From the NCBI GenBank assembly GCA_002269645.1, contig NIVC01000099.1, positions 826,853-890,852 of the forward strand: DNA of 64,000 bases, in the 5' to 3' direction. This DNA is from Macrostomum lignano. Lineage: Eukaryota. Shown piece after piece: positions 26,353-64,000 of the stretch. Below the pieces are notes generated by a model, which worked only from the letters and a program-made list of their open reading frames with translations, had not been told where the DNA came from and searched no databases. Both the position numbers and the translations under genes were made by a program. How positions within the stretch are numbered: the stretch's first letter is position 1; each line of letters begins with the position of its first letter.

Positions 26353-27301
26353 CACGCTGGAGAAGATGAGGCAGTTCGTAGAAGACAACCTCCGGATGGG
26401 GGCAGCTCAGCAGCCGCAGCCGCAAGCTTCGCCAACGCAGCAGTTTCAGCAGCCGCCGAGCCGCTGCGACTACCTGAGCCCGGACTGCGCCGCCAGCCCG
26501 CCGCCGGCCTCTCCCGCCGCCGCTACAGTCAACGGCCACGGCGCCGACTCGGCGTCGCTAGCGGCTTCGGCATCCTCAGCTGGGGTGGCGCTGGCCGACC
26601 CGCTGAGCTCCCTGCAGCGGCTGGTGGACACGGCGGAGAGGGCCGTGCCGACCGTCGCCAGTCCGGCTGCCCGGCCGGCGTCCGCTCCGGATACTCAGCA
26701 GCAGCAGCAGCAGGCCGCGGTGCACGGAGGCCTCCTGCTCAGTCCGCTGTACCACCCGCTGTGCCAGCCGGCCTCATCAGCTGCCAGCAGGTCGTCCTCA
26801 GCCTCTTCAACTCCGGCAGCGGCAGCGGCGGCAACGGTGGCTTCGGCGGGCAGCCAGAAGCCGAAGCGAAAAACCTCGGGCCCGTCGGGGGGCAAGTCGG
26901 CCGAGAAGCTGCGCACTCTGCAAACGAACTCGGCGACTGCGGCTGCGGCTGCGGCTGCGGCAGCAGCAGCGGCGGGCGGGCTCCAGAAGCGGGCCAGGTG
27001 CCAGTACTGCGGCAAGCCGTTCGCCAACAAAGGCCAGGTGCGGCTGCACATCAGCAAGGGCAAATGCCCCCGCCTGATGGCCTCCTTCCCCGCCACCTGC
27101 ATGCCTCCGCTGGTGCACCCGGAGCTCTGCGGCGCCGCGGCCGCAGCAGCAGCCGCCGCGGCAGCCTCAGCCGGCGCCGCAGATTCCTCGCCGCTGGACT
27201 GCCTGCGGGCCGTAGCGGCGGCGGCGGCAGCTGCTGCAGCGGCTTCGGCGCCTTCTGGAACCTCGCCAGCTGCTGCCACCGGGCCCACTGATGCGCGATG
27301 A
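25067..27301 (+). CDS. tsh: Teashirt/tiptop-family zinc-finger transcription factor
   Basis: 744-aa ORF with a CtBP-binding PLDLS motif, ZF1 CSCERSFPSLINLTVHLTETGH, the tsh-typical KLVRGQDMW..EQTREILRC linker into ZF2 CIRCRQSFRTLPELTLHMMHSGHY, and ZF3 CQYCGKPFANKGQVRLHISKGKC; polyQ/polyA tracts. Acceptor TTTCAG at 25057-25062; the start could be 25067 or the next ATG (MADS). Confidence 0.88.
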
Positions 27302-27483
27302 CCGCCTCCTGGCTGGTGCACAATATGCACTTCAGGGTCAGTTCAGGTCTGTGTAACTATTCCAATTAGCACCTGCATGTACACTCGAGACTGGCAGTCA
27401 GCCAATATTCAATATGCAGTGCCTCGCGTACTTTCTGCTCTGTCACACTCCTGGAGATGTCGCGCCCCATGAAATCTGCTGTA

Positions 27484-31089: not shown

Positions 31090-33100
31090 CCTACCGTACC
31101 TGCTCTGCTCTTCATTCTACTCCTCTTCTATCGTGTCTACTCCCTTCTACCGTGTCTACTCCCTTCTACCGTGTCTACTCCTTTCTACCGTGTCTACTCC
31201 CAATTCTACCGTGTCTACTCCCTTCTACCGTGTCTACTCCCTTCTACCGTGTCTACTCCCAATTCTACCGTGTCTACTCCCTTCTACCGTGTCTACTCCC
31301 TTCTACCGTGTCTACTCCCTTCTACCGTGTCTACTCCCAATTCTACCGTGTCTACTCCCTTCTACCGTGTCTACTCCCTTCTACCGTGTCTACTCCCAAT
31401 TCTACCGTGTCTACTCCCTTCTACCGTGTCTACTCCCAATTCTACCGTGTCTACTCCCTTCTACCGTGTCTACTCCCAATTCTACCGTGTCTACTCCCTT
31501 CTACCGTGTCTACTCCCAATTCTACCGTGTCTACTCCCTTCTACCGTGTCTACTCCCTTCTACCGTGTCTACTCCCAATTCTACCGTGTCTACTCCCTTC
31601 TACCGTGTCTACTCCCTTCTACCGTGTCTACTCCCTTCTACCGTGTCTACTCCCTTCTACCGTGTCTACTCCCAATTCTACCGTGTCTACTCCCTTCTAC
31701 CGTGTCTACACCCTTCTACCGTGTCTACTCCCTTCTACCGTGTCTACTCCCAATTCTACCGTGTCTACTCCCTTCTACCGTGTCTACTCCCAATTCTACC
31801 GTGTCTACTCCTCTTCTATCGTGTCTACTCCCTTCTACCGTGTCTACTCCCAATTCTACCGTGTCTACTCCCTTCTACCGTGTCTACTCCCAATTCTACC
31901 GTGTCTACTCCTCTTCTATCGTGTCTACTCCCTTCTACCGTGTCTACTCCCAATTCTACCGTGTCTACTCCCTTCTACCGTGTCTACTCCCTTCTACCGT
32001 GTCTACTCCCTTCTACCGTGTCTACTCCCTTCTACCGTGTCTACACCCTTCTACCGTGTCTACTCCCTTCTACCGTGTCTACTCCCAATTCTACCGTGTC
32101 TACTCCCAATTCTACCGTGTCTACTCCCAATTCTACCGTGTCTACTCTCTTCTACCGTGTCTACTCCCAATTCTACCGTGTCTACTCTCTTCTACCGTGT
32201 CTACTCCCTTCTACCGTGTCTACTCCCTTCTACCGTGTCTACTCCCTTCTACCGTGTCTACTCCCAATTCTACCGTGTCTACTCCCAATTCTACCGTGTC
32301 TATTCCCTTCTACCGTGTCTACTCCCTTCTACCGTGTCTACACCCTTCTACCGTGTCTACTCCCTTCTACCGTGTCTACTCCCAATTCTACCGTGTCTAC
32401 TCCCTTCTACCGTGTCTACTCCCAATTCTACCGTGTCTACTCTCTTCTACCGTGTCTACACCCTTCTACCGTGTCTACTCCCTTCTACCGTGTCTACTCC
32501 CAATTCTACCGTGTCTACTCCCTTCTACCGTGTCTACTCCCTTCTACCGTGTCTACTCCCTTCTACCGTGTCTACTCCCTTCTACCGTGTCTACTCCCAA
32601 TTCTACCGTGTCTACTCCCAATTCTACCGTGTCTACTCCCTTCTACCGTGTCTACTCCCAATTCTACCGTGTCTACTCCCTTCTACCGTGTCTACTCCCT
32701 TCTACCGTGTCTACTCCCTTCTACCGTGTCTACTCCCAATTCTACCGTGTCTACTCCCTTCTACCGTGTCTACTCCCTTCTACCGTGTCTACTCCCTTCT
32801 ACCGTGTCTACTCCCAATTCTACCGTGTCTACTCCCTTCTACCGTGTCTACTCCCTTCTACCGTGTCTACTCCCAATTCTACCGTGTCTACTCCCTTCTA
32901 CCGTGTCTACACCCAATTCTACCGTGTCTACTCCCTTCTACCGTGTCTACTCCCAATTCTACCGTGTCTACTCCCTTCTACCGTGTCTACTCCCTTCTAC
33001 CGTGTCTACTCCCAATTCTACCGTGTCTACTCCCTTCTACCGTGTCTACACCCTTCTACCGTGTCTTCTCCCTTCTACCGTGTCTACTCCCAACACTACT
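31090..33100. repeat. Minisatellite of mixed 19-bp (CTACCGTGTCTACTCCCTT) and 21-bp (...CCCAATT) units, about 100 copies
   Basis: Periodicity; source of three overlapping 666-766-aa pseudo-ORFs. Confidence 0.97.
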
Positions 33101-36827: not shown

Positions 36828-39800
36828 CTAAGCCAGCTCGAGCTCCTTCTCTACCAGCCGCCTGTAGGCGTCAATGCCACCCTCAATAGTCCGCACCAGG
36901 CCATCGGAGACCAGCCACAGCTCGGTGCAGATCATCTTGATCAATCGCTCATCGTGCGACACCAGCACAACGCCGCCGTTGAAGGAGTTCAAGGCGTCGC
37001 CAAGGGCTTTGATGGTCTGCACGTCCAGGTGATTGGTGGGCTCGTCCAGCACCAGGAAGTTCGGCCGGCCGGCGGCGATCAGGGCGAAGGCGATTCGACA
37101 TTTCTGGCCGCCGGACAGCAGGCGGATTTGGCGCAGCGCCAGGTCGCCGCCAGCGCCAAACTGTCCGAGCTGCTGCCTGTAGGCCTCCTGCGGCTGGCCG
37201 GGAAATGTCCGGGCCATGAACTCCAGTGGGGTCGAGTTCAGGTCGAGCTGGTCAACGAAGTGCTGGGAGAAATAGCCGATGCGCAGGCTGCGGTGCGCGT
37301 GCCGGACGCCCTTCGATGGGGACAGGTCGCCGAGGATGATCTTCAGCAGGGTGGATTTGCCCTGCGGAGTCGGGTGGGTGGCGTTGCTATGGTTACTGCT
37401 GGCATCACTTGATTCCACAGCATTCCTACCATTCCTACTCTCTAAAGCATTCGCCTTCAGAATCATTTTGCTAGGAGTTGTTAGGGGAGATTTGAAACAG
37501 GAATTTAGGAATCTTTTAATAGATAGGGATTATTTTATCTCTATTCTAAGGATTCCAAACCAGATTGCGATTTTATCCCTAGATTCCAAACCAGATTGCG
37601 ATTTTATCCCTAGATTCCAAACCAGATTGGGATTTTATCCCTAGATTCCAAACCAGATCGGGATTTTTCATCTCTAGATTCCAAACAGATTGGGATTTTT
37701 ATCCCTAGATTCCAAACCAGATATGGATTATTTTTATCTGTATTCTAGATCCCAATTCAGATTGGGATTATTTTTATCCCTATTCTAGGATCCAAATCCA
37801 GATTGGGATTTTTCTAACCCAATTCTAGGCTTTCGTTTTGACAGGCGCCCCCTCACCTGGCCGTTCTCTCCCACAACGCAGATCCTGGAGTCGGAGCCGG
37901 CGCAGGCGCAGACGCCCTTCAGCACGGTCCGGTCACTGCCCGGATAGCCGAACACGACCTCGTCCAGCTGCAGGATGGGCGGCGACAGCTTGTCCTCGAC
38001 CGGCGGGAACTTCATCGTGACCTCCGAGTCGTGGACTGGCGCCTCCAGCTTGGGCATGGCCTCCAGCATCTTGATGCGGGACTGCACCTGGCTGGCCCGG
38101 TTGGCGTTGTAGCGGAACCGGTCGATGAACTTCTGGATGTGCTCCCGCTCGGCCATCTGGGCGTCGTACTCGCGCTGCTGGTTGAGCAGCTTCTCCTCTC
38201 TGGAGCGCACAAACGTGTCGTAGTCGCCCTTGTAGTACTCCAGCCTCCTGTTGCTGATGAAGAGGATGTCCGTAGAGACGGCGTTCAGGAAGGCGGTGTC
38301 GTGGGACACAACTAAGAGGGTGTTTGGCCAGCGCTGCAGGTAGTTCTCCAGCCAGATGATGGCCTTCATGTCCAACATGTTGCTGGGCTCGTCCAGCAGC
38401 AGCAGGTCCGGCCTGCGGTGGCGGGGCAGTGATAATGGGACAGGGTTAAGCATGGGACTTTGGGGTTCGAAATGACCCTAAAAACTCCCTTCAGAACCCT
38501 AAAACCTCCCTTTTAAATCCTAAAACCTGCTTTCAGAACACTAAAATCCTCTCCAAAACCCTAAAACATCCCTTCAGAACCCTAGCGCCCCTTTAGAACC
38601 CTAAAAACCTCCCTTCAGAACCCTAGCGCCCCCTTCAGAACCCTAAAAACCTCCCTTCAGAACCCAAAAACCCCTTGAGAACCCCAAAACCTCTTGAGAA
38701 CCCCAAAACCCCATTGAGAACCCCAAAACCGCATTGAGAACCAAAAAACCCATCTAGAAGCCCAGTTATTTCCAATAAATGGAGAGAAGAAAAGTGGAGA
38801 GGCTAAAAGTGATATTCCTTCATGGCAAAACTAAAATAAGGGCAGAGATTGGCGCTTTTCTGCACTCACTTGGCAAACAGCGCCCTGGCAAGCGCCAGTC
38901 GCATTCGCCAGCCGCCGGAAAACTGCTTTGTGGGCGCGGTCTGCATCGCCGGCGTGAAGCCCAGGCCGTGCAGGATGCTGGCGACCCGGGACGGCGCCTT
39001 GTCCGCCTCGATCGCGGCCAGCTCGGCGAACAGGGCGGCCAAGCGGTCGGCGGCGCCTGGCGCGTCTGGCTCGGCGCGGCAGCGCGCCTCCTCGGCCAGC
39101 AGGCGGGCCCGCTGCTCGTCGGCCTGCAGGACGCTCTCGACTGCCGGAGTATCGTCACCTGCCACCTGGGATTGGGGAAGCCCGGCGGGTTGAGGAGAAT
39201 GTGAGTGGCTCAGCTTCAGGTCATTTAGACCTCTCATCTAGAGATTGTAAATCTAGATAAAGAAACCGTGAATTCGGATACAGAAACCGTAAATGCGAAT
39301 AAAGAAACCGTGAATGCAGATACAGAAACCGTGAATTCGGATAAAGAAACCGTGAATGCAGATACAGAAACCGTGAATCCAGATAAAGAAACCGTGAATG
39401 CTGATACAGAAACCGTGAATGCGAATAAAGAAACCGTGAATTCAGATACAGAAACCGTGAATGCGGATAAAGAAACCGTGAATTCAGAAAAGGAAACGGT
39501 GAATTCAGATAAAGAAACCGTAAATGCGGATATAGAAACCGTGAATGCAGATACAGAAACCGTGAATCCGCAGCCCAGCTACTCACCTCCTGCTCCACGT
39601 GCAGCACACGGATATGCGATGGCACGCTGATCTGCCTGGTGCTCAGCAGCTTCAGCAGGGTGGTCTTGCCCAGCCCGTTCCGGCCAACAAAGCCGTAGCG
39701 CCTGCCGCTGGCCAGGGTGAGGTTGGCGCCCTCCAGCAGCTGCCGACTGCCGAAGGCGATGTCCAGACCTTCAACGCGAATATCGCGCACGCGGCCCGAC

Positions 39801-40876
39801 TCGCCGTCCAGAGCGGCATCTTTGCGATTAAGCTGCTGGCTCACCTGCGGATGTCCGGAATAGTTTGAACTCCAATTTTACGATCTCTGAGCCACTTTGT
39901 TTTAATCTGTTAGTAGAACGGCCAAGGGGGTGAGGGAGTTGACAACGGAAGCAACGCAGGCGCACGAATTTCAAGGGCACGGGCGAACCTTTTTGCTGTT
40001 GCGCACCTTCGCAAACAAGAATCAAGTCGCCAGCCTTTCGGACCGTCGAGATATTCAAAAATTCTGCCAGAAAGTCGGATTTTTTACAAGTCTGCAAATT
40101 TCACCAGCTCGTCGACGACAGGTGTCTGAATCAGCTCTGACTTCTGGACCTTCAACAGATGGCACCGGGTGACTGTGCCCGGTAAAATTGCTTGGTATTC
40201 CTACTGGAAAGATCATTATGAACTTCAGAGTCCCTAATATCCACTTACAAATCTCTTTCAGAACTCCCAAATCCCTATACAAATATCACCCCATCTCCCT
40301 ACGCAGACTCACGGAAGCTCCGCACTCGTCCTGCGAAGTGAGCGAGTTGGAGGACGCATTGTTAACCTTCATCAGCCGCTTGGCAGCCTTGGGGTCGTTG
40401 GCTAGCGAGGCTTCAACATTGATGAGCTTGTTCTCAGACTTGCGCTGCATCCAGATGCCGCCGCTGTTGCTACCGCCGCCGCCGAGCCCTCCGCCGCTGT
40501 CGGCCACAGCGGAGTGCAGCTCGCCCAGCTGCACAGGCGCGCGCAGCCGCTCCGGACCCGCCGCGTCGCCATTGGCTGTCGCACTGCCAGCCGGCGCGCC
40601 GGAGTCAGCAGCAGCGTCGGCCGCAGAGTCGGCAGAAGCGGCGCCGGAGCAGAATCTGGTGTAGATGGACTCGCAGATGTCGCGCACAGACTCCGGCGTC
40701 TGGTTGGCGTCGGCTTCGTGCAAGAAGTCGCCAATCGCAGCCTCGATGTCGGCGCCGCTGACGAAGTCGTCGACACCGTCTGCCAGCAGGCTGTGCAGGT
40801 ACTGGCTGAAGTCCTCGTCCAGGTTGGCAACCCGGGACTGCAGGAACTGCAGGATTGGCGCGTCGCTGTCTGCCAT
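36828..40876 (-). CDS. ABCF3: ATP-binding cassette sub-family F member 3 (GCN20-like), 735 aa
   Basis: Exons 40313-40876, 39587-39844, 38870-39165, 37857-38412, 36828-37361 (2208 nt, phases consistent). Two NBDs (GRNGLGKT / FSGGWRMR / LLDEPSN; GENGQGKST / LSGGQK / LDEPTN), no TM segments, ABCF3-type N-terminus. Confidence 0.95.
37490..37815. repeat. About 31-bp minisatellite CCAGATTG(G/C)GATTTTATCCCTAGATTCCAAA, ABCF3 intron 4
   Basis: Periodicity. Confidence 0.88.
38470..38755. repeat. Degenerate about 21-bp repeat GAACCCTAAAACCTCCCTTCA, ABCF3 intron 3
   Basis: Periodicity. Confidence 0.8.
39255..39570. repeat. 21-bp minisatellite GATA(C/A)AGAAACCGTGAAT(G/T)C(A/G), ABCF3 intron 2
   Basis: About 15 copies. 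Confidence 0.92.
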
Positions 40877-41823
40877 GCGGCTTGCAAGCTGGGGAGGGCA
40901 GATTTTTATGTACTTAAGCATTTGAGCAGATGAACTCACTCACTCCAGTATCTTCAATGGCGAGTACCCTAGGTTTTATTTTCGTGTAACAGTGTGTCAT
41001 GATGTACCAGCCTTCATCTTTTGTGATCGAGCAAAAGTAAGATATCCATATTATTAGAACTTATTATAAGACTTTATAATTGTAGAGAATTTGCTGAATC
41101 ATGCAATAACTTAAGCCTAGGTAGGTCGCAAACTTTAAGACATGCCAAGAAAACCAAAACTGTGATCCAAATCAGGCATTATACTTAGCAAAACAGCTTT
41201 CTACTTTCAGTTCAGTAACAATGAAGAATACATAAGCTATTTTATAAGAATAGAGGCAGCTAAAATGACTTTGATAAGTTTAGAAGCCTAAGCTTATAGA
41301 CATAAACAATTGCCAATTGGTTCAGATATATATGCATTAGCCATTGAAATATACAGGGCAGATTTAGGCAGAACAATTAAAGAAAGTAATAAAAATTGGG
41401 TATAGTTTAAATTACTACTAAATTGAAGTAACTTACATGCAAATATGCTAAGTGGCTCATTCAGTAGATATTCTAAGAATCTGTGAATTCTATAAAATAT
41501 TCATAATTAAATTAATCAAATAATTGATATAAATAAATACAACTAATATAAAAATTTATAAAACTAATAGATGATTTAAATATTAAAAACCTTAAATAGA
41601 AGTTCTAGGTGCCTAATTATAAACAAATTAATAAATAGTATGGGCTATAAACTAGATTAGACTTTTGCGATTAATACAACTATATAGATAAAAAACAAAA
41701 TTTTGTATAGATAATTGATGTGCCAATCTATTATCCTGCACCAACTTCAATTGGCAGGCTATTATGTGATCTAGACTGATGGGCATTCTTTCATTTTATG
41801 AAACCTATAGGACAATTGATTAC

Positions 41824-49120: not shown

Positions 49121-49128
49121 TATAAAAG
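49121..49128 (+). promoter_or_regulatory. Candidate TATA box of the giant secreted protein gene
   Basis: TATAAAAG about 140 bp upstream of ATG 49267. Confidence 0.45.
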
Positions 49129-49266: not shown

Positions 49267-52200
49267 ATGAGGATGCTAGCGTCGGCTACCAGTCTCATGC
49301 TGGTTGCCACTGCGCTACTGACAACTGTCCGGTGAGTTTGATACTACTCTAAGTAAGCAGTTTTGATTACTATATGCATCTACACTGTAAAGCTAATAGA
49401 AATGGTCCTTTTTCATTTTTTTCAACAAAATTAGCGCCCATCCCAAGACTGGTCTTTCACCCACGGTGAGGGACCCGGTGGTCAAGTGCGGCAACGCTGA
49501 CTACGTTATAGTGCTGAACCTGCAGCGCAAAGACTTCGACAGTTTGACAGCCTATCAGCAGCAGATGACTGCTGTTGTCGCTCGCGCCCGCCTCCTCACT
49601 GAGAACGACATCGGCGTCGGCTTTGTAGCCTTCTCCAAGAAGGTCGAGCACACGATACCGGTGACGCGCAATCTGACGCTAGTGCAGCGCAAACTCAACC
49701 GGCTGCTGTCCCAGCTTCCGCGGTTCGACGGAATCGCCACGGGAGACGCCATGCTGGCTGCCAAGCACCTGCTCGCCAAGTACCACCACCAGCTGGTTGA
49801 GGTGGGAAGACGCAAGTGCAAGCTGCTGGCTGTGGTGGCAGTGGGTGGCGACCGAAACGCTGGCACTCACCGCACGTTCGCCGCGTCGACGCAACTGCGC
49901 CGTGTTGCCTCGCACGTATTTGCAGTCAACCTGGCGGGCGGAGCCTCTCCGTGAGTTGATTGAACTGCAGGCAGTCTCATTTTTGCTAGCGTTTGAGTGG
50001 GGAAGACTTTTGCTTCGATTTTTGTCTGCTTAATCTTGATTATTTCATCCAATTCCATCCCCCAATTAAATTTTGTAACCGTCTCTCGTCTCTCTAATGC
50101 ACTTCCTGCAGCAAAGAGCTCTACAGAATCGCTAGCGACGGAACGCGTGGCATCTTCGACGCGTCCAACATTGTTGAAGTCCTCACCAAGACCGAGGCCT
50201 ACGCCCAGGTGTTCTGTCCGTGCCCGCTGTCCTGGACCACCTATGACAACTGCACAGTCCGGGGCCGGGCGCAGGTGCAGCGCTTCTTCTACAATCGATC
50301 GGAGGAGTTGCCGCACAATTGCATCAGAAAGTTAGCGATTTCGTTCGAGCCGTGTGGTAAGCCCTTTTTTATTGCTTTTTAACAACAGTTCAATTTTAAA
50401 GTATTCTTATGGATGATCGTGGATTGTACTACATTGTTGCGCCTTGAGCAAAGCCCACGAGATCTAGAAGACCAGCAGCAAGTCAGAGCCACTGCATGCA
50501 GCCTGCACGAGTCGTGCTTATGCATCCACACGCACATTTATGCTCGCGCTTACTCGAAGGGGTGTGAAATTATTGTAGGTTAGAATTGGCGAACTCTGTG
50601 AGACGCTGCTGATGACAGCTAAATGCACAGCACTTCTAAGTAGTGGCTGACATGCTTAAACAGACAGAATCAGGGGACTGGGAGTGGCTCTCAGGTCAAA
50701 AGTGCCAAAATATTCGCATAAGTCACCAGCTAACTCTCATCGCCAACAGATTGCCCTCCAAATCGAGTTGAGCGAAGCGAATGCGTCAACGGATTCATTC
50801 GAATCTCCACCTTTGTGTACTCCCGGCCTGACAACAACAGCGACTGTACGGAGTCCGTGACCACCCAGACTGAGGCCTGCGGCAGGGCCACCGGCTGCGA
50901 GTCCTTTGTGTGTCCGCCGGGGTCCGTGTGCGTTAACGGCACCAATAACAGTGAGTTGAGAAACGCTAAATAACTCGCGGTCTTCATACTCGTAAAATTA
51001 TTTATATAACATCAAATTGGATGTGAATTGAGCACAAAATGGAGCCCGAACTTTGCGCTCTGGGTCCAACTACATCGAAACGATTTCTTGTCGGCTTACC
51101 TGACTAGAAACACTGAGATACCAAATTCGAGTCTTCTCTATTGGGTTCTAGCATAGAATGGGATGGATTGGGTGGTGTGACGTTCTATTTAGACTATACT
51201 GAGAAAAGTAGACGTGTACAATTTAGGTTGTAAAATCTCTCTCATACCTGGAAAGATGCCGCCTTAAAAGAAGACAGCATAAAAGAAAGAAAAGTCTGTG
51301 CACACGGAATGCTGGGAGAGGGGCCCACTGACCAAGGCAAACAAGCCGAGGTTCAACCCCCACTTTTAGTGTGTCACATGTGGGTTTCTTGATGTTTCTA
51401 GTTATTGATATCTCGGTGATGCTACTCGCTTCAAAGGCATTGTTTTCGATGAAACTGCGCCGTACCTCACAGTATTTCGTAGTATACATAAATTGCAACA
51501 TATGTATCTCTTCAGCAGATCTGAAGTCTCGTCACAGTGACACTGAATGCGCCCTATCTCCACCAGGGGCATCACCAGCGGAAGGACATGCCCCCCCCCC
51601 GATTAAAGCTATGGGGGCATGTCTATGCTTTCGCCCCGGCACCACCTCGTGACCTGTTATGAAAATCTAGAACTTCTCTTCAGGCGCCAAAATAAGTCCC
51701 TTCATTGCCAAAAAAATCAGTACTGACGTCTAGGATTCTTGATTTTGCAACCTCCACCAAAAAACCCATGGCCAGGGGCTTGATCTCAACCACTCTACAT
51801 TCACAGCCATCAGATGCAACTGCACGAATCCCAACGACATCTTCAAGACCACTGGCTGCGAGAGCTGCGGCGACCGCTCCCCGCTCACCCGCTACGGACC
51901 CTGCATTAACCGCCAGCGCACTGTCGTGGTGACCACCTTCACCAGGATCAACGACACCTACTGTCACCACGTTTTCAACATGCGGAAAGAGAATTGCTCA
52001 GGTAGGAAATGGGAGCTGCCTCCTGATCAGAGATCGGGGGTCAGACGATCAGAAGTTTGGGAGGTCATCCTGACAGTTGGGAGGGGAGGTCATCCTGACA
52101 GTTGGGAGGGGAGGTCATCCTGACAGTTGGGAGGGGAGGTCATCCTGACAGTTGGGAGGGGAGGTCATCCTGACAGTTGGGAGGGGAGGTCATCCTGACA

Positions 52201-55200
52201 GTTGGGAGGGGAGGTCATCCTGACAGTTGGGAGGGGAGGTCATCCTGACAGTTGGGAGGGGAGGTCATCCCGAGAGTTGGGAGGGGAGGTCATCCTGACA
52301 GTTGGGAGGGGAGGTCATCCTGACAGTTGGGAGGGGAGGTCATCCTGACAGTTGGGAGGGGAGGTCATCCTGACAGTTGGGAGGGGAGGTCATCCCGAGA
52401 GTTGGGAGGGGAGGTCATCCTGACAGTTGGGAGGGGAGGTCATCCTGACAGTTGGGAGGGGAGGTCATCCTGACAGTTGGGAGGGGAGGTCATCCTGACA
52501 GTTGGGAGGGGAGGTCATCCTGACAGTTGGGAGGGGAGGTCAACCCGAGAGTTTGGAGGGGAGGTTATCCTGACAGTTGGGAGGGGAGGTTATCCTGACA
52601 GTTGGGAGGGGAGGTTATCCTGACAGTTGGGAGGGGAGGTCATCCTGACAGTTGGGAGGGGAGGTCATCCTGACAGTTGGGAGGGGAGGTCATCCTGACA
52701 GTTGGGCTATAGCTTGTGATGACTTTGCGCTAACTCACAGACTTTCACTCCATGTGCTAAGCGACTTACAAAGATGAGTATGAATAATTGAAATCAATAA
52801 TTTCGAACTCGCCAGCCTGCCAAGGCAGCGGCAGCAGGCAGTTCGGGCCATGCGTCCGGGGCTATCAGCAAGTGACGGTGACCCTCTACAGGCTGAGGGG
52901 CGGCCGGTGCTACAAGAGCCTGAAAACTTTTCAACGGCCTTGCCGACTTCAATCCGAGTACCGTGAGTGACTTTTGCAGTTTGCTTTTAAAATAAGGGAT
53001 TCAGGAAGTGACTCAGTAGCATTGAATGACCGAGATTCAGGAAGTGACTCAGTAGCATTGAATGACCGAGATTCAGGAAGTGACTCAGTAGCAGAGAGTG
53101 ACCGAGATTCAGGAAGTGACTCAGTAGCATTGAGTGACCGAGATTCAGGAATTGACTCAGCGGCAGAGAGTGACCGAGATTCAGGAAGTGACTCAGTGGC
53201 ATTGAGTGACCGAGATTCAGGAAGTGACTCAGTGGCAGAGAGTGACCGAGATTCAGGAAGGGACTCAGTAGCATTGAGTGACCGAGATTCAGGAAGTGAC
53301 TCAGTAGCATTGAGTGACCGAGATTCAGGAATTGACTCAGCGGCAGAGAGTGACCGAGATTCAGGAAGGGACTCAGTAGCATTGAGTGACCGAGATTCAG
53401 GAAGTGACTCAGTAGCAGAGAGTGACCGAGATTCAGGAAGTGACTCAGTAGCATTGAGTGACCGAGATTCAGGAATTGACTCAGCGGCAGAGAGTGACCG
53501 AGATTCAGGAAGTGACTCAGTGGCAGAGAGTGACCGAGATTCAGGAAGGGACTCAGTAGCATTGAGTGACCGAGATTCAGGAAGTGACTCAGTGGCAGAG
53601 AGTGACCGAGATTCAGGAAGGGACTCAGTAGCATTGAGTGACCGAGATTCAGGAAGTGACTCAGTAGCATTGAGTGACCGAGATTCAGGAAGTGACTCAG
53701 TAGCATTGAGTGACCGAGATTCAGGAAGTGACTCAGTAGCAGAGAGTGACCGAGATTCAGGAAGTGACTCAGTGTTAGAGAGTGACCGAGAGTTGGAGTC
53801 AGAGTCAGGTGCGCCATGCAAGCCGCATCCGTGACCCGCCCTGAGCAGAGTGCATCGGCAGCGCTCTGAGCGGCGGCCAGTTTCTCACCTACGACGGCCA
53901 GCTGATTGACTTTCCGGGGCCCTGCGAGTATCTGCTGAGCGAGAGGCAAGGCCACTTCCAGGTGCGAGTCCGGCACGCCATCAAATTCCCCAGCCTGCCG
54001 CAGCTCACCCAGCTTGACGCCATCGTCATCGTGATGGGCAACAGGAGCTACGAGCTCGCGAACAACCTCGTCTTTAAGGTTGGTTGGCTTCCTGAAACAG
54101 ACTAGTTATCACTATAGCGAGTTCGATAGACAGCTTTCTTTAATACTAATCCTATTCGAATCCTCTCTTCCCCAGCCGCACCCCCTTTGAGGTCCCGCAT
54201 CCCCACCCTGATAACCATTCAGACCCCACTTCCCCACCCTAATCCGCATTCAGGCCCCACTTCCCCAACTTGATCCCCATTCAGATCCCACTTCCCCACC
54301 CTAATCCGCTTTCAGATCCACTTCCTCACCCTGATCCCCATTCCGATCCCACTTCCCCACCCTAATCCGCATTCAGGCCCCACTTCCCCAACTTGATCCC
54401 CATTCAGATCCCACTTCCCCACCCTAATCCGCTTTCAGATCCACTTCCTCACCCTGATCCCCATTCCGATCCCACTTCCCCACCCTGATCCCCATTCAGA
54501 CTCCCCATCCAAAACTTGATCCCCTCTTAGAGCTTCATTCCTCAAACCATATCCATATACTAAAATTCACTTTCTAATCTCGATTCCCATGCCATTTTCA
54601 GACCCTCGAAGTCCCAATTCGACACTCCTAATCTCCAGCCAATCTTACCGAACTTACCGAAATCTTGCCGTGATCCCTTCCCCCGAGTAAATCAAAGCAC
54701 TGATTCGCATTCACTACAATCTCAAGAGATCCCCCGATCCCGTTGCCGCAGGTGGGCGCCGTGGCGCAGCCGCTGCCCTACTCGGACGCGGCCAGCGGAA
54801 TCGAAGCGATCTACAGCGACGACGCGCTGGTGTTTGCGGCCGGCGACCTGTACGTGCAGATGCGCGGCTCGGCCGCCACCATCAATGTGCGCTCCGGGGC
54901 CGGCGGCCTTCGCGGCATCCTGGGCAACTGCAACGGCAGCCCGGGTGATGACTTCACGAATAGCAGCGGCCAGGACGTGTCGCAGCAGTCAAATCCTAGC
55001 GCGGCTCTTGGGAACAGCTTCCGAGTGAGACCTGCTTGGGCTGGGGTCGGTGGGAGAGGGGAGAGGGGGGAGAGGTGGGTCTTGGTCGCGCGATGTCCTG
55101 AGCCTGAGAGTGGTTAAGAGTGTGCGCTGGCTGATAATGAAACAGTATCGTATCAGAATCATAAGCTTTCGGTCTAAACGTCACTATGTTTGCATTTTAT

Positions 55201-58200
55201 TTTTATGAGCTTTGAATAAACTGTGAATTCCGTTGGCTTCAATTTCTTTCTAACTTTCTCTCTCCAGTTGACGACCTGCTCAACAGCAGACTGCTGCTCG
55301 CTGCCGGACACAGCGCCAGCTTGCGGCACCAACGCCAGCATGGAGGCGGCTTCCGTGTCCAACTGCGGCCACCTGACGGCGGACGCCATGTCGCCCTTTG
55401 CTCACTGCGGCCAGACAGCCATGCAGCCGCTGTTCAGGGCCTGCATCTCGCTCTACTGCCGAGCCAAAGGTAATAGGCAACATTTTATTGATGTTTGTCT
55501 TAAGTATGAAAGTAGATTTTGTAGGAATCCGAGTTTGATAAGTTCGAACTGCGCTCGTAGTTTTTACTTTTCAAGGTATATTTAGAATTAAAAATACTTG
55601 AGGGCGCTTGGTTACCAGGCAATAAGGCGATATCACCAATCTTGATTAATTTCGCAGCTAACACAATGTGGCAACGCTCGCTTGTGTGCAGCACCCTCGA
55701 GGCTGCAGCCTTCCGTTGCTACTTGCAGCAGCAGAACGGCACCCAACGGAGCCGTTATCCGATATTCCGGTCGTCTAACTTCTGTCGTAAGCATCTTTTA
55801 GGACCAATACTCACATTTTTTTCATCCCAATTTTCAAGATCCCTGAAAGAAATCCGAATCTTTCGCAGCAAAATCCTGCGGTCACAATGCTGAATTCGTT
55901 GACGATGCTGACTTTTGCCCGAGGACCTGCGCGCGTCACTTCTTTAACAGCCAGTCGCTGGGCTGCGTGACGCCATTCGGCTTCAGATCAAGGAACGTGA
56001 ACGGCCAGTCGCCGCTGCCAGGCTGCCAGTGCAAGCCGGGCTTCGTGCTGGATGGAAGCAACTGCGTGCTACCCAATGAGTGCGAGTGCATCTCCAACCT
56101 GTGCATCGACCGGCAAAACCGGACAGTCTGCGAGGCGTGGAAGGCGCAGGGCTACTGCGACAAGTACCCGCTGCAGATGCGTCGCTACTGCAAGCTCACC
56201 TGCGACCAGTGCCAGGCGCCGTGCCAGGACCAGATCAGCAAGACGACATGCCAAACGATCAAGTCGCAGGGCAGGTGCAGCGACAGCTTCTACAAGCAGA
56301 TGTGCCAGCTGACTTGCAATCCGAGTGACTGCGGTAGGTTTCAAAACCAGGTTTAATCTTAATCACAGATCATAGAATCAGCTAGATTTTTTACTTGCAA
56401 AAGCAGAGCGTATCCTTTTTTCAGTAGTCTGTCTGTGCAGTGTCACTTAAATTTGAAGCTAAAATTACATTTCCTTCCTCGGGGTTTGCCGCTGCATGAG
56501 CAGGTGGGTAAAGAATGAGCAAGCAAGCGATGTACACAGGTGAACGCAAGACGGACGAAACTCAGCCTAGGGGCAGGCCCAATCTGGCTTAGCCAATGAG
56601 AGAGCAGTAAGGAGAGAGGTCAAAGTCAGACACAAGCCAAACTGTTTATGGGCCTGGCTGGAGGCTGGGGCGCCACCCCTTTTCTCTCTTGCTCGCCATG
56701 CACACGTCCGCCGAGCACGATTTGTGTTTTTACGTTTTCCTGTAATTTTTGGATTTGAGCTCATTCCTTTTTATTAAATAATTTAGAGCCGGAGGCAGTC
56801 TGGAGTCGTTACAGTAGAATGAGGATGCTGATATCTGCAGGCAGAAATTGTTTTCTTTCTGGGTCTGCTTGTAGAGACCCAGAGGCGATTGCTGCAGCTT
56901 CAAAAAAGTTTTAATAACTTCTAAAATTTAATAGATAGGAACTTAAATGTGAATATCTGGAATTCCACAATTCCAGAATGTCCGCCCTGCAAAACCGTCC
57001 GCGGCCCATGCGACTCGCAGAACAAAAACCGCCGGGTCGTCACGTACTGCTACGCGCCGGACAGCAATGGGCGCTGCCAGCGCAGCCAGTCCAGCAGCGT
57101 CTACGAACCCTGCGGCGACTGCCAGGAACAGCAGCAGCGGGTGGACACTCGGTCCTGCAACTACTGCACTCAGGAGCAGGTGACCAGGATTGTGCGGACA
57201 GTTCGCGAGACTACAGGCGAGATGCGCTGCATTGAGGTGAACACAAACATGACCACCAGGAGTCCCGGCTGCGAGTGCCAAACGAACACCAACAGGACTG
57301 TGTGCTACCGCAACTCTGAACTATACGTCATCAACACCGTATCAGCACCCTCCGCTGACTGCGCCACCTGCAACACCACAGTCACGGAGACCCGACTGCG
57401 CAACGTCACCTGCACAAAGGTTGTTAAGCGCGGTGAGTGCGACCAAGTTGTCACCAAGCGACGGCCAGTGACAGTGACGCGCGGAATTGTGCGCAACTGC
57501 CAATGCGACCTGATCACGGAGCAGTATGAGGAAATGTGCGTCTGCCCGAAGCCGCACTGGACGCCAACAATTTGCCATCGCAACCGCGCAAAACTGCGCT
57601 GGTTTGTAGCTTTCAGTCTCGTACATGGCCGCTGCGTGCCGATTGTGAAGCCGCACAAGCACCGCGTGCCGTGTCCAAGGCGGCATCACGTCAAGTACAA
57701 ATGCAAGAGCTGCAATCGATATAAGTTGCATTCCTGGTACGAGCGGCGTCATTGCCGTTGTATTCGAAAAAAGAAGACAGTTGAAGCTGGAAGATGCTGT
57801 GAGCCTTTTAGATTTCTTACTGCTACTCTCGTACTTACCTGCACTGTAATAAAACACTGTACTATGGCTTATTGTATCTTACTTTGGTTTAAATCTTTCT
57901 ATTTTGCAGGCTGCCCCAAACCGAAGAAGGTACGCGGCGAGTGCATAGGCCAGCATAGGCGCATTTTAATCACCCATTACACGCTGGACAACTACAAGTG
58001 CCAGGCAGACACTCGAGAGATTTCTGAGCGCTGCGGCTGTCCGCCATCAAGGCCGATTAAAGAGTGCGACGGTGAGACTGGCGTGATAACCGTAGGCAAA
58101 CTGGTCTTCAAGCTGGTCGATGGAACCTGCGAAGAGGTTCGACAAGTAAAGACAGAGCCTACAGGTGAGTGCAGTCTATCGTATCGTTTCGGGTTTTCTT

Positions 58201-61200
58201 TTCTAATGTAAATATGAGACGGCACTTTGGTTTCAGGGACATTCTAGATCAATCGTTTAAATTGATGAAAGTTGTTTTGAATGCAGCTTTGGATTAACAT
58301 AGGACCATTCTTTCATTACTAGCTTTCGAGCAGCAAATCAATAATCATCATCTCCATTACCTGAACTTAGTTTGCAAGAAGATGCGAGTGATTCGCCGAG
58401 GTCCGTGCCGCCTGTTGAAGGCGGACGACGTCGTCAAGTACCGGCGCGTGTACTACGAGCTGTGGAAGCGAATTCGTGGAGATTGCAAGTGTAAACACAT
58501 TAAGCGGTCAAAGCTGGTCGCCTGTGGCTGCCGCGAGCCTCAAGTGCGCGTGTCAAAGTGCCCGTCTGGCTGTCCCACCACCAGCCGCAGCTGTCCCGAA
58601 CATTGCTATCGGACACGAGCGGTGGTTGAATACCGCCTGGAAGATGGCAAATGCCATCCTGAGGAGAGAGACCAGCAGGATCTGCCCTGCTGCTGCGAGA
58701 AGCCGCGTAATAAGCCGCCGGTTTGCGAGAACGGCAAAATTTTGGCTATTCGAAAATATCACGTCCAGCTAGTGGCCAACGTGAGTTACCACAAAATCAG
58801 CTTCTTTTCGTTTTATATATTACAGATAGTGGCTATACAAGTTGGAAAACACCAGGAAGATTAGCAGCGAAGCTTTTCAGTGATTGCAAAGGCGCCCTGT
58901 ATTTCCTAATTAAAAACAGGCCTGCAAAATCAAGAAGCACGTCGTTCGCAAAGACGTTACTCGACACTGCGATCTCACTGACGTGCGCCGAATGCGTCAC
59001 GGAGACGTTATCATAGTGAAGCGGCGCGTTGTGCGCAACTGCCGCTGCATTTGGCGCGAGAGGCGAACCAGCTGCCCGGCTCGGTGCCCTCCGCCCTCCA
59101 AATTTGTCAGGTGCGACGGAGCCACAGGCGAACGGGTGCTCATCAAGCGATTTTACAAGATGCATTCCTGCCACTGCCTGCCAGTGAAGCGAATTCGCCG
59201 ACTGCCAGTTGACTGTCCGGAGCCGCGCATTGAGCGCCGGAATTTTTGCTTTAGAGAGAATCCAGCTGTCATAATCAGGCGCATTAACTTCTACGTGGAC
59301 GGCGAATGCCACTGCAGAAAGAAGGTCTCTGAGAAGAGATACCGGTGTGAAGGAGAGGGTAAGTTGCTTCGAATGCTATTCGGAGAAATGTCGCTTCAGC
59401 AGTAAAGAACTCTCGCTATAGAGTATGGCAGCTTTTTAACTCTGCTTTTCGGAAGAGCTCTACTTATGTTACTTACAGGATAAAAAACTAACAATATTTT
59501 ATACAAAAGATTTTAGCGGTTTTATCTGTCTTAAACTTTAGAGTCAATCTTAGCTAAATTCCAAGGCCTTTTTAATGTTTTTAAACATGGTATCTTTTAG
59601 TGTGTGATCAACGCCCGTCCGTTAGACTCCACTGCCACGCCAACCGCTTGTACAATGTCGTGACTCTATTCAAGCGAGACGAGGAGGGCCGCTGCGCACC
59701 CCATGAGTTCAAACACAGAGTTGAGACCCCGCCCTGCACAGGTCACGGCAAGAGGAAGAAGGTTAAGAAATGTGTCAACGGAAAGCTGATCCTGCTTATT
59801 AACTGGCTTGAAAGGCGACACTGCAAATGCCACACAAGATACAGGAAGAGCGTTATCGGATCCTGCAATAGCTGTAAGTAGAGAAATTGGGAACTGTAAA
59901 GTGTGAAAAAGCAAAATATTATATTAGGGTGCTTCATGATACTCTGGCATCATGATACTTTTGTTGTAAGTTTCGGTGTTGGATTTTGGAAATTCAATTT
60001 TCACTCAGTCGATATTTTGATAGTTTTAACCAGCTCTCTCTATTCTTTAATTGCAACAGACTGCGAGCACAGAAACCGCGGTAAGAGCCTTCGGACCCGA
60101 CGCCGCTGCAATAAGCACACAAACGAACTAGTTGTCTACCGCCTGAAGTGGAACTTTGACGGCGATCACTGCGTGCGCAGATGGGTCGCCACTAACAAGC
60201 GGGTGGAACCAGACTGTCCAGGACCTCGGCTTCGACGACTGCCCTGCGACCACGAAACTGGCAAGCAGCGCCTAGAGAAATTGGTGTATCATATGCGCAA
60301 CTGCAAATGCCGCGGTCCAAAGGTCAAGGTGTCTTACAGGAAGTGCACTTGCCGCGGTCCCAAGGTGCTCGGCCGGTACTGCGACCATCAGCATGGCTGC
60401 ATTGTTGTTCGAATGCTGATTCATAAATGGAACTTCGAGATGGATGCGTGTCACACTAGACTCGTACGAAAATCGATTCCAGTTCGTAAGTGCAGCTTGA
60501 TGCGAGTTTTATTGATTTTATAGTTGTGTTCAAATGATTATTTCTCAATTTTGAAATATGTATATTTAAAAACCTGCTACCTGCTTTTAAACCTGCTACT
60601 CTTTAGCATGCAAACATCACATCCATTCGAGCCACGGCGCCTGCATCCACGGTCATATGCAGTATCGTCGCATTCGTTATGTCCGCGACCGGCACAACTG
60701 CCGCTGTCGAAAAAAGATCGAAAAGAAACTAGTCAACTGCCGTAAGTTTAAAAACTACAAAGCATGTTTTTCACATTGTTTAAATAATGTTATTAGAGGC
60801 CTAAAACCATAAAAAATGAATAACTCTTCAGACTGCCCCGTTGTTATTCGTCGGAAAAAGTGCAACGATAGACGGAGTGTTGCAGTTACAAGAATTGTTT
60901 ACCGAAAGTTCAGTACAAAGAAGCGCCGCTGTGTTACTGTTAAGGTGAAGCGCCACCACCGAAAGTGTCGCTGCCCAAAGCCCAAGGAGGTGAAGAAGTG
61001 CGTCAACGGAAAGAGGCTTGTTAAAAGAGTCGGTTATCGATTGGTGGAGGGCGAATGCGAGAGAGACAAATCCTCGGAAACGTTCAGCATAGGTCAGTAT
61101 TTTTATTTTGACCTTCTGTCCTAATCTAAACAAAATAATAACAATCTTAACATAAATACTTCTAGTTTGCCGCAAGCCGCCGGTCGTTCGATCCACTAAA

Positions 61201-64000
61201 TGCGACGAGAACACGTGCTTTCGAAAAATTCTTACTTATAAATGGAAAGTGAATCCGAAAAATTGTCGCTGCCAACTTCAATTAGTGCATCAGAAGACGT
61301 GCCGATGCTGCGGTAGGTTTAGAACTTTTTCTGTTTGCCACTTATCGTATTCACGTATGCTTTAAAACTCAATATTTGTCCAACTATCCACAGGATGCCC
61401 AAAGCACAAGCTTAGCCGGACTTGCATCAAAGGGAAGATCTGGAAATTTACAGTCGTTATTCACTCTCTGCGGATAAAGAAATGCTCGAAAACTTGTCGC
61501 AGACATGTGACGCATCGCACCGAGCGAGTTCGCTGTCCGCAAAAGAAACGCGTGCACTGGTCTCGCTGCCACCGGTGCCGTAGTAGGAAGATGGTGACGA
61601 AATTCCGCAGCATTGGCTGCCGATGCCGCGCCGATTATACAAAACTGACCACTTTAGGTCCTGCTGCTGTCACGGAGGGACCCGCGTGAAAAAGCTCTGC
61701 CAGCAGTCTACTGGTCTTTGGGTTAGACATATTAGTAAGAAAAAGTTGTCAGGGCACAAGTGCGTGCGGCACACTAAAGTCAAATACCTGCCACGACCAG
61801 GTACAGTTAAGAGTTATTTTATTTGTTAATAAAAGTTTGCAAGTAGATTTATAGTGAAATAATTTTGATTTAAATTTTCAGTTTGTCGTCTGCCTGAAAC
61901 GCCTGTTACATACGGAGTTTGCAACAGGACCACGTGCCAGCAAACAGTAACAAAAGTCGTTAATGTTTTGAACAAGCACACCTGCAGTTGTCACATGGTT
62001 AGCAAGCCAGCAGGAACCAGAACCTGCTGCTGCTTGAATACAACGCCTGAAATAAAGATTAACTGTGTCAACAACAACATGAAGCAACGCGTTACAGTGG
62101 CTCCCGTGTTCGATGAAGCCACACATACGTGCACCACTAAAACCGAAATCGCTACTGAATTGGTGACTTGCGGAGATGGGGAAACTCGCTCTTCAGATCC
62201 GCCGTGCACTGGAGAGACCCGAACAATTGTTAGGACAAGATCTGTTGTTGTTAACTGCGTCTGCGTTAACCAGACTGTTGACACCAGAACAGAGATGTGC
62301 ACTTGCCCATCCCCAACTAAATGGACAGTTCGCTGTGATGTCAACAGCGGAAAGCAAGTGCTTACAAGAACCGTTTATAATTTAGTAAACGGTTCTTGCT
62401 CTGCAGTCACTGAAACAAAGCTCCGTACTGTGTTCTGCAACCAGAAACCACAGGTTGTACCTGTGTGCAACAGAGACAGCTGTATTGAGACCGTGACAAC
62501 AACAGTGACACGACTTGATACGTCTACTTGTACTTGCGTTCCGGACAGAACGATATCTACAAGACAGTGCTGCTGCCCAACTACGACGCAGACACGAAAC
62601 GAATGCATCGACAATCAAATAAATACCATAACTACCAGGCAGACGCTTAATGCGGTAACTCGGACGTGCGAGTCATCCGACACCACCACCAGATCGGGAG
62701 AGGTGCCTTGTAAAAATGAGACCCGAGTTAATGGGCCCTGCGATCGGGCAACTAGGAAACGCAAAATTAAGGTTACTAGGCGAGAAATAATAAACTGCCA
62801 ATGTCAAACCACTGGCGTTTCAGTTGCTCGTGAGCTATGTGGTAAGCGGTGCGAAATTTATCGATATCGTCTGTGATGCACTTCAAAATTGTTTGAATAA
62901 ATTTTGCCACCACTTTACCGTTTCAGCTTGTCCACCAACGCGGAAGAATCAAGGGCAATGCGATCGCAAAACTTGCATGCGCCAAGTGACATTGGTTAAG
63001 TTTAATGCGGTAACATCGAATAATGGCACTCTGCACTGCGTCAAGACTATAAGTCACCGCCAGCAGCGCTGTTGTTGCACTCCATTGGGTCATAAGCGAG
63101 TTCGCGTGCATGTGCAGTGTGACAGAGAAACAGGAAATCTCTTGATAAATAAAGAATGGAGCAAGTTTGTTGCTTCTACAAAACAATGCCGAACTTTGCA
63201 CAAGTCTTGGATCAAAGAAGTTGGTGAGTAGGACTTTTAGAAATACTTTTAGCTATTATATTTCTGCAGTTTTCTTAGTTATTATACGAGCTTTTCTCGG
63301 ACATTCTACTCGACTTTTTGGGAGCCGTAGCCCAGCGGTAGCGCAGCTGCTCTGGTGTGCCAGCGACCCAGGCTCGATTCCAAGTGCAGTCACATTAATT
63401 TGGGGCTGAATTGGAATCTCTGCTTGGCTCTGCTCGTGCAATTAACGGCCTTGAGAGCCAACCCCCCAAGACGCAGTGAAGTGTACATGCCTAACGATAA
63501 TATAAAGTTAGGGCCGCTGTACACTCCTGTGTGAGTGTGTGCCTGCGTACGTATCCGCGCGCTTGTATGCCTGCTCAGGGGAGTCGGCGGAATGGGCAGT
63601 AATGCCTCTCGCCGGTTGTGTGCCTATGTCGCTTAAAGTGCGCCAGGGTGCACAGAACCCCCCCCCCTGCCTCTAATAATAATAAAACCGACTTTTTATT
63701 TCCAGATTGTACCAGAAAGTTTGATGGAGAAGGCCACCTAGAACACCGAGGTCGGTGCAATCATCGAACAGGACGAAGGAAGATAATAGTGAAGTGGTAT
63801 ACGCATGACACACGCAAGTGCCGATGTAAACTTCACGTCCGAAAGCACTACAGAATCTGCTCATGCAAGCACAAGCGTGGTATGAAGCATAAATACTGCG
63901 ACAAGGAAACAAATGAGCTGGTGTCTGTGCGGAAATTCTTTGTTTTCGAAGATGATCAGTGCATTCCTCAGGAATCTCAGAAAAGAAAGCAAATTGTTTG
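49267..64000 (+). CDS. Giant secreted Cys-rich modular protein (SP-vWA-Cys modules-vWD-C8-TIL-2xShKT-long Cys-module chain), mucin/adhesive-like, 3'-partial
   Basis: Exons: 49267-49331, 49435-49950, 50112-50356, 50750-50950, 51807-52001, 52816-52962, 53849-54078, 54752-55024, 55268-55469, 55658-55786, 55869-56333, 56977-57798, 57910-58164, 58371-58780, 58920-59358, 59601-59873, 60060-60485, 60607-60741, 60832-61092, 61166-61312, 61394-61800, 61882-62841, 62927-63223, 63706-64000+. All GT-AG; phases join except for a 1-nt deficit in 61394-61800. About 7.8 kb coding. Confidence 0.88.
49435..50190 (+). other. vWA-like domain (degenerate MIDAS) of the giant protein
   Basis: ADYVIVLN / VGFVAFS / ATGDAMLAA / VFAVNL / ELYRIAS follow the vWA secondary-structure pattern; DxSxS is absent. 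Confidence 0.7.
52060..52706. repeat. Minisatellite, 25-bp unit GAGGGGAGGTCATCCTGACAGTTGG, about 26 copies, intron 5 of the giant gene
   Basis: Exact periodicity. Confidence 0.96.
52995..53800. repeat. Minisatellite, 36-bp unit GAGATTCAGGAAGTGACTCAGTAGCA(TT/GA)GAGTGACC, about 22 copies, intron 6 of the giant gene
   Basis: GAAG at 53041 and 53077. Confidence 0.96.
53849..56333 (+). other. vWD-C8-TIL cassette followed by two ShKT domains
   Basis: vWD: GGQFLTYDGQLIDFPGPCEYLL...GILGNCNGSPGDDF...GNSF. C8: CGHL..PFAHC...CISLYC...CSTLEAAAFRC. TIL: CGHNAEF..CPRTC..GCQCKPGFVLDGSNCVLPNEC. ShKT: CIDRQ..CEAWKAQGYC..MRRYCKLTCDQC and CQDQ..CQTIKSQGRC..MCQLTC. Confidence 0.88.
54210..54520. repeat. C-rich about 30-bp repeat CCCACTTCCCCACCCT(A/G)ATCC..ATTCAG, intron 7 of the giant gene
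   Basis: Periodicity. Confidence 0.85.
63320..63688 (+). mobile_element. 369-bp tRNA-derived SINE with 9-bp TSD
   Basis: A box TAGCCCAGCGG, B box GGCTCGATTCC, (TAA)n tail; CGACTTTTT at 63311-19 and 63689-97. Confidence 0.8.

Follow-up and report, generated by a model that had tools for sequence, protein, structure and literature searches.

A giant gene of Macrostomum lignano, split in the public annotation, encodes a putatively secreted protein built largely from an undescribed 43-residue flatworm module

Giant, secreted, cysteine-rich proteins with a contiguous VWD-C8-TIL unit include FCGBP, MUC2, MUC5, von Willebrand factor (vWF), otogelin, zonadhesin and SCO-spondin, and the same unit occurs in the adhesive proteins of flatworms. 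In Macrostomum lignano, Mlig-ap1 comprises a C-type lectin, 17–19 EGF modules and a centrally placed vWD-C8-TIL, with K/R-rich, Cys-free, low-complexity GRK repeats at its ends, while Mlig-ap2 contains two vWD domains, an LDL-receptor domain, 46 repeats of 221–255 aa and thrombospondin type-1 (TSP-1) repeats (PMC6410801). The architectures of Tmed-ap1-3 of Theama are similar to those of Mlig-ap1/ap2, ap3 having the domain set of ap1, and the ap2-type repeats measure 221–330 aa across the set (PMC6410801, PMC9229212). The K/R-rich regions of Mlig-ap1 are cohesive through charge, and heparin blocks them (PMC6410801). Here we describe a gene from the same animal that shares some of these features and combines them in another way. 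It lies at positions 49267–64000, + strand, of a 64,000-nucleotide stretch of contig NIVC01000099.1 (the window; all positions are counted from its first base). Its product is a candidate secreted protein of ~5,744 residues, most of which consists of a small Cys module that we could match to no described family.

The gene model was assembled from stop-free segments of the + strand and from the DNA letters themselves, and databases were consulted only afterwards. It comprises 24 exons from the ATG at 49267, amounts to 2,597–2,598 codons and is open at the window end. All 23 introns (73–886 nt) start with GT, mostly as GTGAGT, GTAAGT or GTAGG, every acceptor is an AG preceded by a pyrimidine-rich tract, and the junction phases are all compatible. 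Exons 1–21 correspond to the GenBank protein PAA91016.1 (BOX15_Mlig008915g5, 2,043 aa) with every residue identical, and PAA75931.1 (Mlig019034g1), from a second contig, shows 99% identity to the hand-built model. A preliminary description of this DNA, made from its letters, had proposed one giant gene for a Cys-rich multidomain protein with a signal peptide, at least 24 exons joined by phase to give about 2,600 aa, and no end within the window. The gene model and its identity to PAA91016.1 bear this out, the length of about 2,600 aa with the proviso that one nucleotide in exon 21 has to be restored. Over its last 24,734 bases the window is identical to the terminal part of contig NIVC01000099.1 (890,852 bp; Mlig_3_7 assembly, GCA_002269645.1). 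Since the window is the final 64 kb of this contig, it is the contig end itself, and not merely the window, that cuts the gene.

The remainder of the gene is found on other contigs. The copy on NIVC01003657.1 (L003) is colinear with window 51658–64000 and then runs ~11.4 kb further to a stop codon. PAA50356.1 (BOX15_Mlig008915g3, 3,733 aa, from another contig) begins within exon 21 and differs from the window at 6 of 587 shared residues. Two older models of 3,793 and 3,945 aa begin in exon 21 and exon 16, respectively, and together with PAA50356.1 they contribute 3,146 residues past the window end. Joining our window model to the PAA50356.1 tail yields a composite of 5,744 aa (~663 kDa, pI 9.7, 528 cysteines). 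As reconstructed in this way, window 49267–64000 is the 5′ 45% of a single ~26 kb gene of ~5,744 codons. In GenBank this gene is split into the 'hypothetical proteins' g3, g4 and g5 of BOX15_Mlig008915, beside the copy Mlig019034g1, because of contig breaks and single-base indels; the public annotation is thus wrong but correctable. The protein is public only as such fragments and is neither named nor characterised, in agreement with the preliminary description, in which its domain order was not recognised as that of a named protein.

The frame correction deserves comment, as it bears on whether the window copy is intact. Exon 21 (61394–61800, Cys modules) lacks one base after 61628, at ~61629, where the window has GCCG-CGCCG versus GCCGCCGCCG in L003 and in the copy on NIVC01000855.1 (L002). 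Both of these copies stay in frame at the site, reading CRCRRRLYKTDHFRSCCCHGG, and the models P0007, P0027 and P0028 stay in frame across it as well as across the window end. PAA91016.1 ends at the TGA at 61687–61689 because exon 21 shifts frame in the window. Alternative splicing around the break was considered: the only phase-compatible donors are GTCTCG at 61560 and GTGCCG at 61575, both weak, and their use would remove part of a module. This alternative was rejected because L002 carries the extra base, which favours a 1-nt deletion. Each of the three copies has one private exon indel at a site where the other two are intact, namely in exon 21 of the window, in exon 19 of L002 (~21951) and in exon 15 of L003 (~7739); the indel in L002 explains the odd, out-of-frame end of PAA75931.1. 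In exon 12 of L003, moreover, ~100 nt seem to be present once more than in the other copies (~5436–5643). The three private indels look like consensus errors of long-read assembly.

A window copy that is a truncated or decaying duplicate, yielding only the 2,043-aa product or nothing functional and leaving the downstream exons as relics, would account for the same stop codon. The one-base difference at 61629 is real in the assembly and leads to the stop at 61687–61689 where the public annotation ends; moreover, M. lignano is described as a hidden polyploid in which gene copies are numerous (PMC10468722). However, exons 22–24 retain perfect splice sites, phases and open frames and differ from the L003 copy at 6 of 587 residues, and the occurrence of a different private indel in every one of the three copies is what long-read consensus errors would produce. 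Over exons 1–18 the window and L002 differ at 0.90% of nucleotides, compared to 3.5% in short introns, and 30 synonymous stand against 18 nonsynonymous codon changes. The resulting ratio of nonsynonymous to synonymous change (pN/pS) of 0.18 also speaks against decay, and we conclude that purifying selection acts on the gene. That the window holds a dead copy is thus less likely, and we regard it as quite improbable.

The composite protein has the order signal peptide, vWA, four Cys modules, VWD-C8-TIL, two ShKT, ~95 modules and a C-terminal cassette of ShKT-like, PAN and module segments. Exon 1 (49267–49331, aa 1–22, identical to the start of PAA91016.1) encodes the signal-peptide-like N-terminus, MRMLASATSLMLVATALLTTVRA followed by HP, with a hydrophobic core and V-R-A ahead of the likely cleavage site, as judged by eye. 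A TATAAAA motif stands 146 nt upstream of the ATG (49121–49127, + strand); it is a motif match, so that the TATA box noted in the preliminary description is still a candidate, while the signal peptide noted there is matched, again by eye, by this N-terminus.

The vWA domain occupies the bulk of exon 2 (49435–49950) and ends in exon 3 (50112–50356). On the spliced exons 2 and 3 the Pfam VWA profile is matched over positions 19–164 of 174 with 32.3 bits (cut-off 23.8). The DxSxS of the metal ion-dependent adhesion site (MIDAS) is replaced by N-L-Q-R-K: the protein reads VIVLNLQRKDF after the first strand, where a cestode relative reads VFLVDESVSS. The four Cys modules between vWA and VWD are encoded by exon 3 (aa ~229–275, from reading of the spliced sequence), exon 4 (50750–50950; aa 277–318, module profile 1.3e-11, together with a short EGF-like Cys stretch that has a weak EGF-like Pfam match, E 0.0097), exon 5 (51807–52001, aa ~363–409) and exon 6 (52816–52962, aa ~409–456), the last two assigned by the module profile.

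VWD is divided between exon 7 (53849–54078, N-terminal half) and exon 8 (54752–55024, C-terminal half). The Pfam match covers the whole profile across the junction (48.9 bits, cut-off 22.9). A C8-like region follows in exons 9 (55268–55469) and 10 (55658–55786), and exon 11 (55869–56333) encodes TIL (31.7 bits, cut-off 24.5) and two ShKT copies with the six-Cys pattern at aa 812–889 (Pfam ShK 36.1 bits, cut-off 20.9). C8 was not detected by Pfam, and its assignment comes from the alignment of the VWD-C8-TIL stretch to the D assemblies of FCGBP, which includes the C8 cysteines (PDB 8rde, E 5.5e-20). With C8 placed in this way, the domain string vWA-vWD-C8-TIL-ShKT2 of the preliminary description is confirmed. 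At the other end of the full protein, PAN_1 is matched with 27.2 bits; the ShKT-like segments of the C-terminus, with one of which the protein ends, are recognised by their Cys pattern and are unscored by Pfam.

The VWD-C8-TIL unit had been taken beforehand as the polymerising assembly known from mucins and vWF. The unit is present, whereas the argument drawn from it is weak. Gel-forming mucins and vWF have several N-terminal D assemblies (D1-D2-D′D3) with CxxC motifs of the CGLC type, while the giant protein has a single one in ~5,744 aa and is devoid of CGLC. In the alignment to FCGBP the position of CGLCGN reads RGILGNC, and neither CGLC nor GDPH was found in the VWD. Pfam detected one VWD within the first 937 residues and no further one in the remainder of 3,793 aa, so no second D assembly was found, and a scan of the last 489 aa (E ≤ 0.05) gave PAN_1 alone and no cystine knot. 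The giant protein further differs from the D-assembly proteins in that it has no Cys-free Pro/Thr/Ser-rich (PTS) mucin domain, in that its bulk is another repeat, and in its N-terminal vWA and its ShKT pair.

Small cationic disulfide-rich beta modules as well as ShKT and PAN domains are found in defence proteins. A mucosal-barrier or microbe-binding protein of the FCGBP type, placed on epidermis or gut and trapping microbes with its cationic modules, might therefore be considered, and among solved structures the VWD-C8-TIL stretch is indeed closest to FCGBP. However, the D assemblies of FCGBP number 13 and carry GDPH cleavage motifs, whereas the giant protein has one without GDPH, and in the profile search against PDB and in Pfam the module has no similarity to known antimicrobial families. 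We consider such a barrier function very unlikely.

Most of the protein is made of the 43-residue module. Cys spacing is periodic from residue 891 to the window end, and a module profile (hidden Markov model, HMM), seeded with eight units chosen by hand and refined by iteration over the protein, recognises 38 units after the ShKT pair and three between vWA and VWD, where a fourth was identified by eye. The dozens of unnamed Cys modules announced in the preliminary description are thereby substantiated, and the three to four N-terminal units, which had gone unmentioned, are added to them. On the composite full-length protein the profile gives ~100 matches. A unit of ~43 residues has a C-P-x-P-like start and the pattern C1-x(9–11)-C2-x(16–21)-C3(-x-C)-x(11–13)-C4, and the link to the following unit is often a terminal CxC or CCC motif. 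No Pfam family was found for it in scans of the 1,660-aa module region and of 39 single units, and the profile had no match among PDB sequences even at E ≤ 10.

The targets of structure prediction were taken from exon 13 (57910–58164, two Cys modules). AlphaFold predicted one module, from an alignment of 39 units, with a mean local confidence score (pLDDT) of 96.6 and three long antiparallel strands. For a two-module target, run with an alignment of non-overlapping di-modules, the score was 86.6 and each unit had three strands as in the single module. The prediction for the module is thus a flat beta-meander of three antiparallel strands. Foldseek found nothing significant in PDB for either model (best E values 0.35 and 0.09); CorA, GFP-like barrels and mosquito SGS1 (E 0.09) were among the matches and were dismissed as generic, insignificant beta-sheet similarities. 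In its size, its predicted three antiparallel strands and its disulfide-forming cysteines the module may resemble TSP-1 repeats and midkine/pleiotrophin domains (40–55 residues), the midkine domains being also strongly basic, as many module copies are. No sequence relationship to these was detected: Pfam TSP_1 was unmatched, PTN_MK_C appeared in 1 of 39 modules at E 0.07, and neither WxxW nor CSxTCG occurs in the module. Comparison with midkine and TSP-1 repeats by hhalign, a weak test, gave probabilities of 0.5% and 0.2%, and the 50 matches that Foldseek listed per model included neither family. What is new here is the recognition of one ~5,700-aa gene and of an undescribed, flatworm-restricted module, the sequence itself being already public in fragments.

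Along the chain the modules change in composition by blocks. Residues 891–1078 are Thr/Gln-rich with four N-glycosylation sequons, residues 1079–2084 contain 26% K+R and 6% His (pI 10.2) with zero sequons, and residues 2085–2402 contain 20% Thr and five sequons. The first of these blocks and the onset of the cationic one lie in exon 12 (56977–57798, six Cys modules). Cationic Cys modules continue, according to the module profile, through exons 14 (58371–58780), 15 (58920–59358), 16 (59601–59873), 17 (60060–60485), 18 (60607–60741, one module, His-rich) and 19 (60832–61092); exon 20 (61166–61312) encodes one further module. Exon 22 (61882–62841) encodes seven modules within a Thr/Asn-rich block with sequons, exon 23 (62927–63223) leads into the next cationic block, and exon 24 (63706–64000), also made of modules, is cut by the contig end and continues in L003 and P0027. 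The alternation persists through the full protein, in which about four near-neutral, Thr/Ser-rich, sequon-bearing stretches lie between cationic ones whose net charge per 150 residues is +13 to +41 (mostly ≥ +20). The Thr-rich blocks still contain ~10% Cys and are built from the same 43-aa module.

M. lignano is the source both of the giant protein and of Mlig-ap1/ap2, and a comparison with these adhesive proteins had already been suggested in the preliminary description. With Mlig-ap1/ap2, Tmed-ap1-3 and sea-star Sfp1 the protein shares its very large size, VWD-C8-TIL, domain parts that are rich in Cys, and extended K/R-rich regions that lend themselves to cohesion through charge. In contrast to the ap proteins it has vWA, ShKT and PAN, and its basic residues lie inside folded Cys modules and not in low-complexity repeats. 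Pfam, run on the N-terminal part, on the modules and on the C-terminus, revealed no lectin, EGF array, LDL or TSP-1 domain, and no protein of ap1 or ap2 size was among the matches of the module search (E ≤ 1e-3). Identity with Mlig-ap1/ap2 or Tmed-ap1-3 was therefore rejected on the architectures as published (PMC6410801, PMC9229212), the comparison being one of descriptions.

The distribution of the module was determined by an exhaustive HMMER search of 1.84 billion representative proteins with the module profile (E ≤ 1e-3). It returned 21 proteins, and every named one is from a flatworm: several from M. lignano, others from the monogeneans Cichlidogyrus casuarinus and Protopolystoma xenopodis and from the cestodes Sparganum proliferum and Dibothriocephalus latus. 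The remaining carriers come from sequencing runs or database entries without a name. No planarian or schistosome protein reached the threshold. The proteins of Cichlidogyrus, Protopolystoma and Dibothriocephalus likewise carry the 43-aa module in tandem, and all are uncharacterised hypothetical proteins. BHF74423.1 of S. proliferum (P0016, 3,690 aa) has 25 modules in tandem and, like the giant protein, a vWA, which in P0016 is a true one (80.9 bits). Over its C-terminal 440 residues the M. lignano protein is colinear with the ShKT-like/PAN/module tail of P0016 (27% identity, E 3e-25). P0016 differs in the internal position of its vWA and in that no VWD was seen; its model is probably fused at the 3′ end to a methyltransferase gene.

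Within M. lignano, the proteins P0008–P0010 and P0029–P0034 contain the same module 10–15 times each. The names SUEL-type lectin, VWFD and DUF4789 given to them in UniRef were unconfirmed by Pfam scans, and Pfam matches to EVH1_PP4R3 and DUF2291 on other module-bearing proteins were discarded as spurious, with no qualifying stretch. A homologue search with the whole protein found its own cluster alone among the matches listed.

The monogenean and cestode relatives with the same module, and the colinear C-terminal cassette of the cestode protein, argue against a Macrostomum-specific glue and suggest an old, shared flatworm function. Matrix proteins typically feature vWA and PAN domains as well as long arrays of small disulfide modules. 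The giant protein could accordingly belong to the extracellular matrix or the basal lamina, in a role like that of hemicentin, papilin, fibrillin or SCO-spondin, made by ordinary tissues and not by glands. The occurrence of the module in both parasitic groups, and of vWA together with the cassette in one cestode protein, would fit this well, but the extreme positive charge and the His content are unusual in matrix proteins. It would also be odd for a core matrix component that its module is undetected in planarians and schistosomes at E ≤ 1e-3. We therefore rate an ordinary matrix component as unlikely.

The reading that we favour, at a probability of roughly 0.55, is that of an extracellular structural or cohesive, polyanion-binding macromolecule encoded by one gene of ~5,744 codons. 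The chain would consist of small beta units, rich in disulfides, strung one after another over a great length. Its cationic, His-rich blocks might bind polyanions such as sulfated glycans, the glycocalyx or negatively charged surfaces, by analogy with the charge action of the K/R regions of Mlig-ap1, and its Thr/Asn blocks may serve as glycosylated spacers. Through the vWA, D-assembly and PAN domains at its termini the chain would connect with partners or with itself, and multimerisation is conceivable. A secreted giant structural protein, as had been put forward beforehand, is hence a reasonable proposal and partly supported: the gene, the domains and the signal-peptide-like start agree with it, while the part of the argument that relied on polymerisation is weak. 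The more specific suggestions made there, a gland-made adhesive, rhabdite material, egg cement or mucus, are guesses.

Several points weigh against the favoured reading. Entry of the product into the secretory pathway is judged from a signal read by eye and not by a predictor, and both the fold of the module and the picture of a chain of modules come from structure prediction. The features by which mucins and vWF polymerise are absent, as there is one D assembly, no CGLC and no cystine knot found. Relatives in endoparasitic cestodes are no less compatible with a general function in the matrix than with a glue. Neither Mlig008915 nor Mlig019034 was found in the literature and supplements searched, and general searches on cement glands, ShKT and cell atlases yielded no expression data. 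Finally, the frame break in exon 21 of the window copy, discussed above, belongs here as well.

A bolder version of the favoured reading would make this protein the founding and best-preserved member of a flatworm-restricted family of giant 'block copolymers', based on a new disulfide-linked beta-meander. In these proteins cationic, His-rich blocks would bind polyanions in a folded state and in a manner tunable by pH or metals, with glycosylated blocks as the spacers. The protein would then represent a new molecular solution for cohesion or attachment that is common to free-living flatworms and to parasites, in the latter in the attachment or egg structures of monogeneans and cestodes. This extension is tentative, and we think it rather doubtful at present.

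The surroundings of the gene showed further features. Upstream, on the − strand, lies an ABCF3-like ABC-ATPase gene (~39267–40885 and beyond; 738-aa product with Pfam matches to PWI_ABCF3 and ABC_tran). Since such a neighbour is also present upstream of the L002 copy, the duplication is larger than the giant gene. In L003 the gene is followed directly downstream (26567–27774) by one for a WSC-domain protein of 292 aa, which is also of a secreted type and binds carbohydrates.

Minisatellites occur in three introns of the giant gene, namely intron 5 (52059–52706, 26 copies of a 25-mer), intron 6 (52998–53791, 22 copies of a 36-mer) and intron 7 (54167–54524, 11.6 copies of a 31-mer), and their copy numbers vary among the three assembly copies. 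The 36-mer array gives rise to spurious long open reading frames on both strands (52949–53821, −, 290 aa; 52974–53834, +, 286 aa). Positions 1–48000 of the window are extremely dense in minisatellites, with 36 Tandem Repeats Finder rows at a score of ≥ 300 and periods of 4–226 nt, although these rows overlap and several can describe one array. Examples are found at 4451–6432 (11-mer, 175 copies), 6921–8982 (13-mer, 170 copies) and 31116–33091 (19-mer, 100 copies). The swings of GC content and GC skew in the window profile are probably due to these arrays.

Intron 23 contains an insertion of ~370 nt (63320–63688) that is missing from L003. It is flanked on both sides by the direct repeat CGACTTTTT and has a tRNA-like start (GTAGCCCAGCGGTAGCGCAG...GGCTCGATTCC) and an A-rich tail, and thus looks like a tRNA-derived short interspersed element. 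ARAGORN and Rfam called no RNA genes in the window, the insertion included, and no second copy of it was found in the window or in the fetched loci.

If our interpretation is correct, M. lignano would possess, beside Mlig-ap1/ap2, another type of giant secreted protein that is rich in Cys and strongly basic, and as this animal is the main model of reversible bioadhesion, the protein would be an obvious candidate for functional study. A flatworm-only module of 43 residues that occurs in ~100 copies and lacks a match in Pfam or PDB would merit its own family entry and a solved structure. The relatives in monogeneans and cestodes could mark a secretion or matrix shared by parasitic flatworms.

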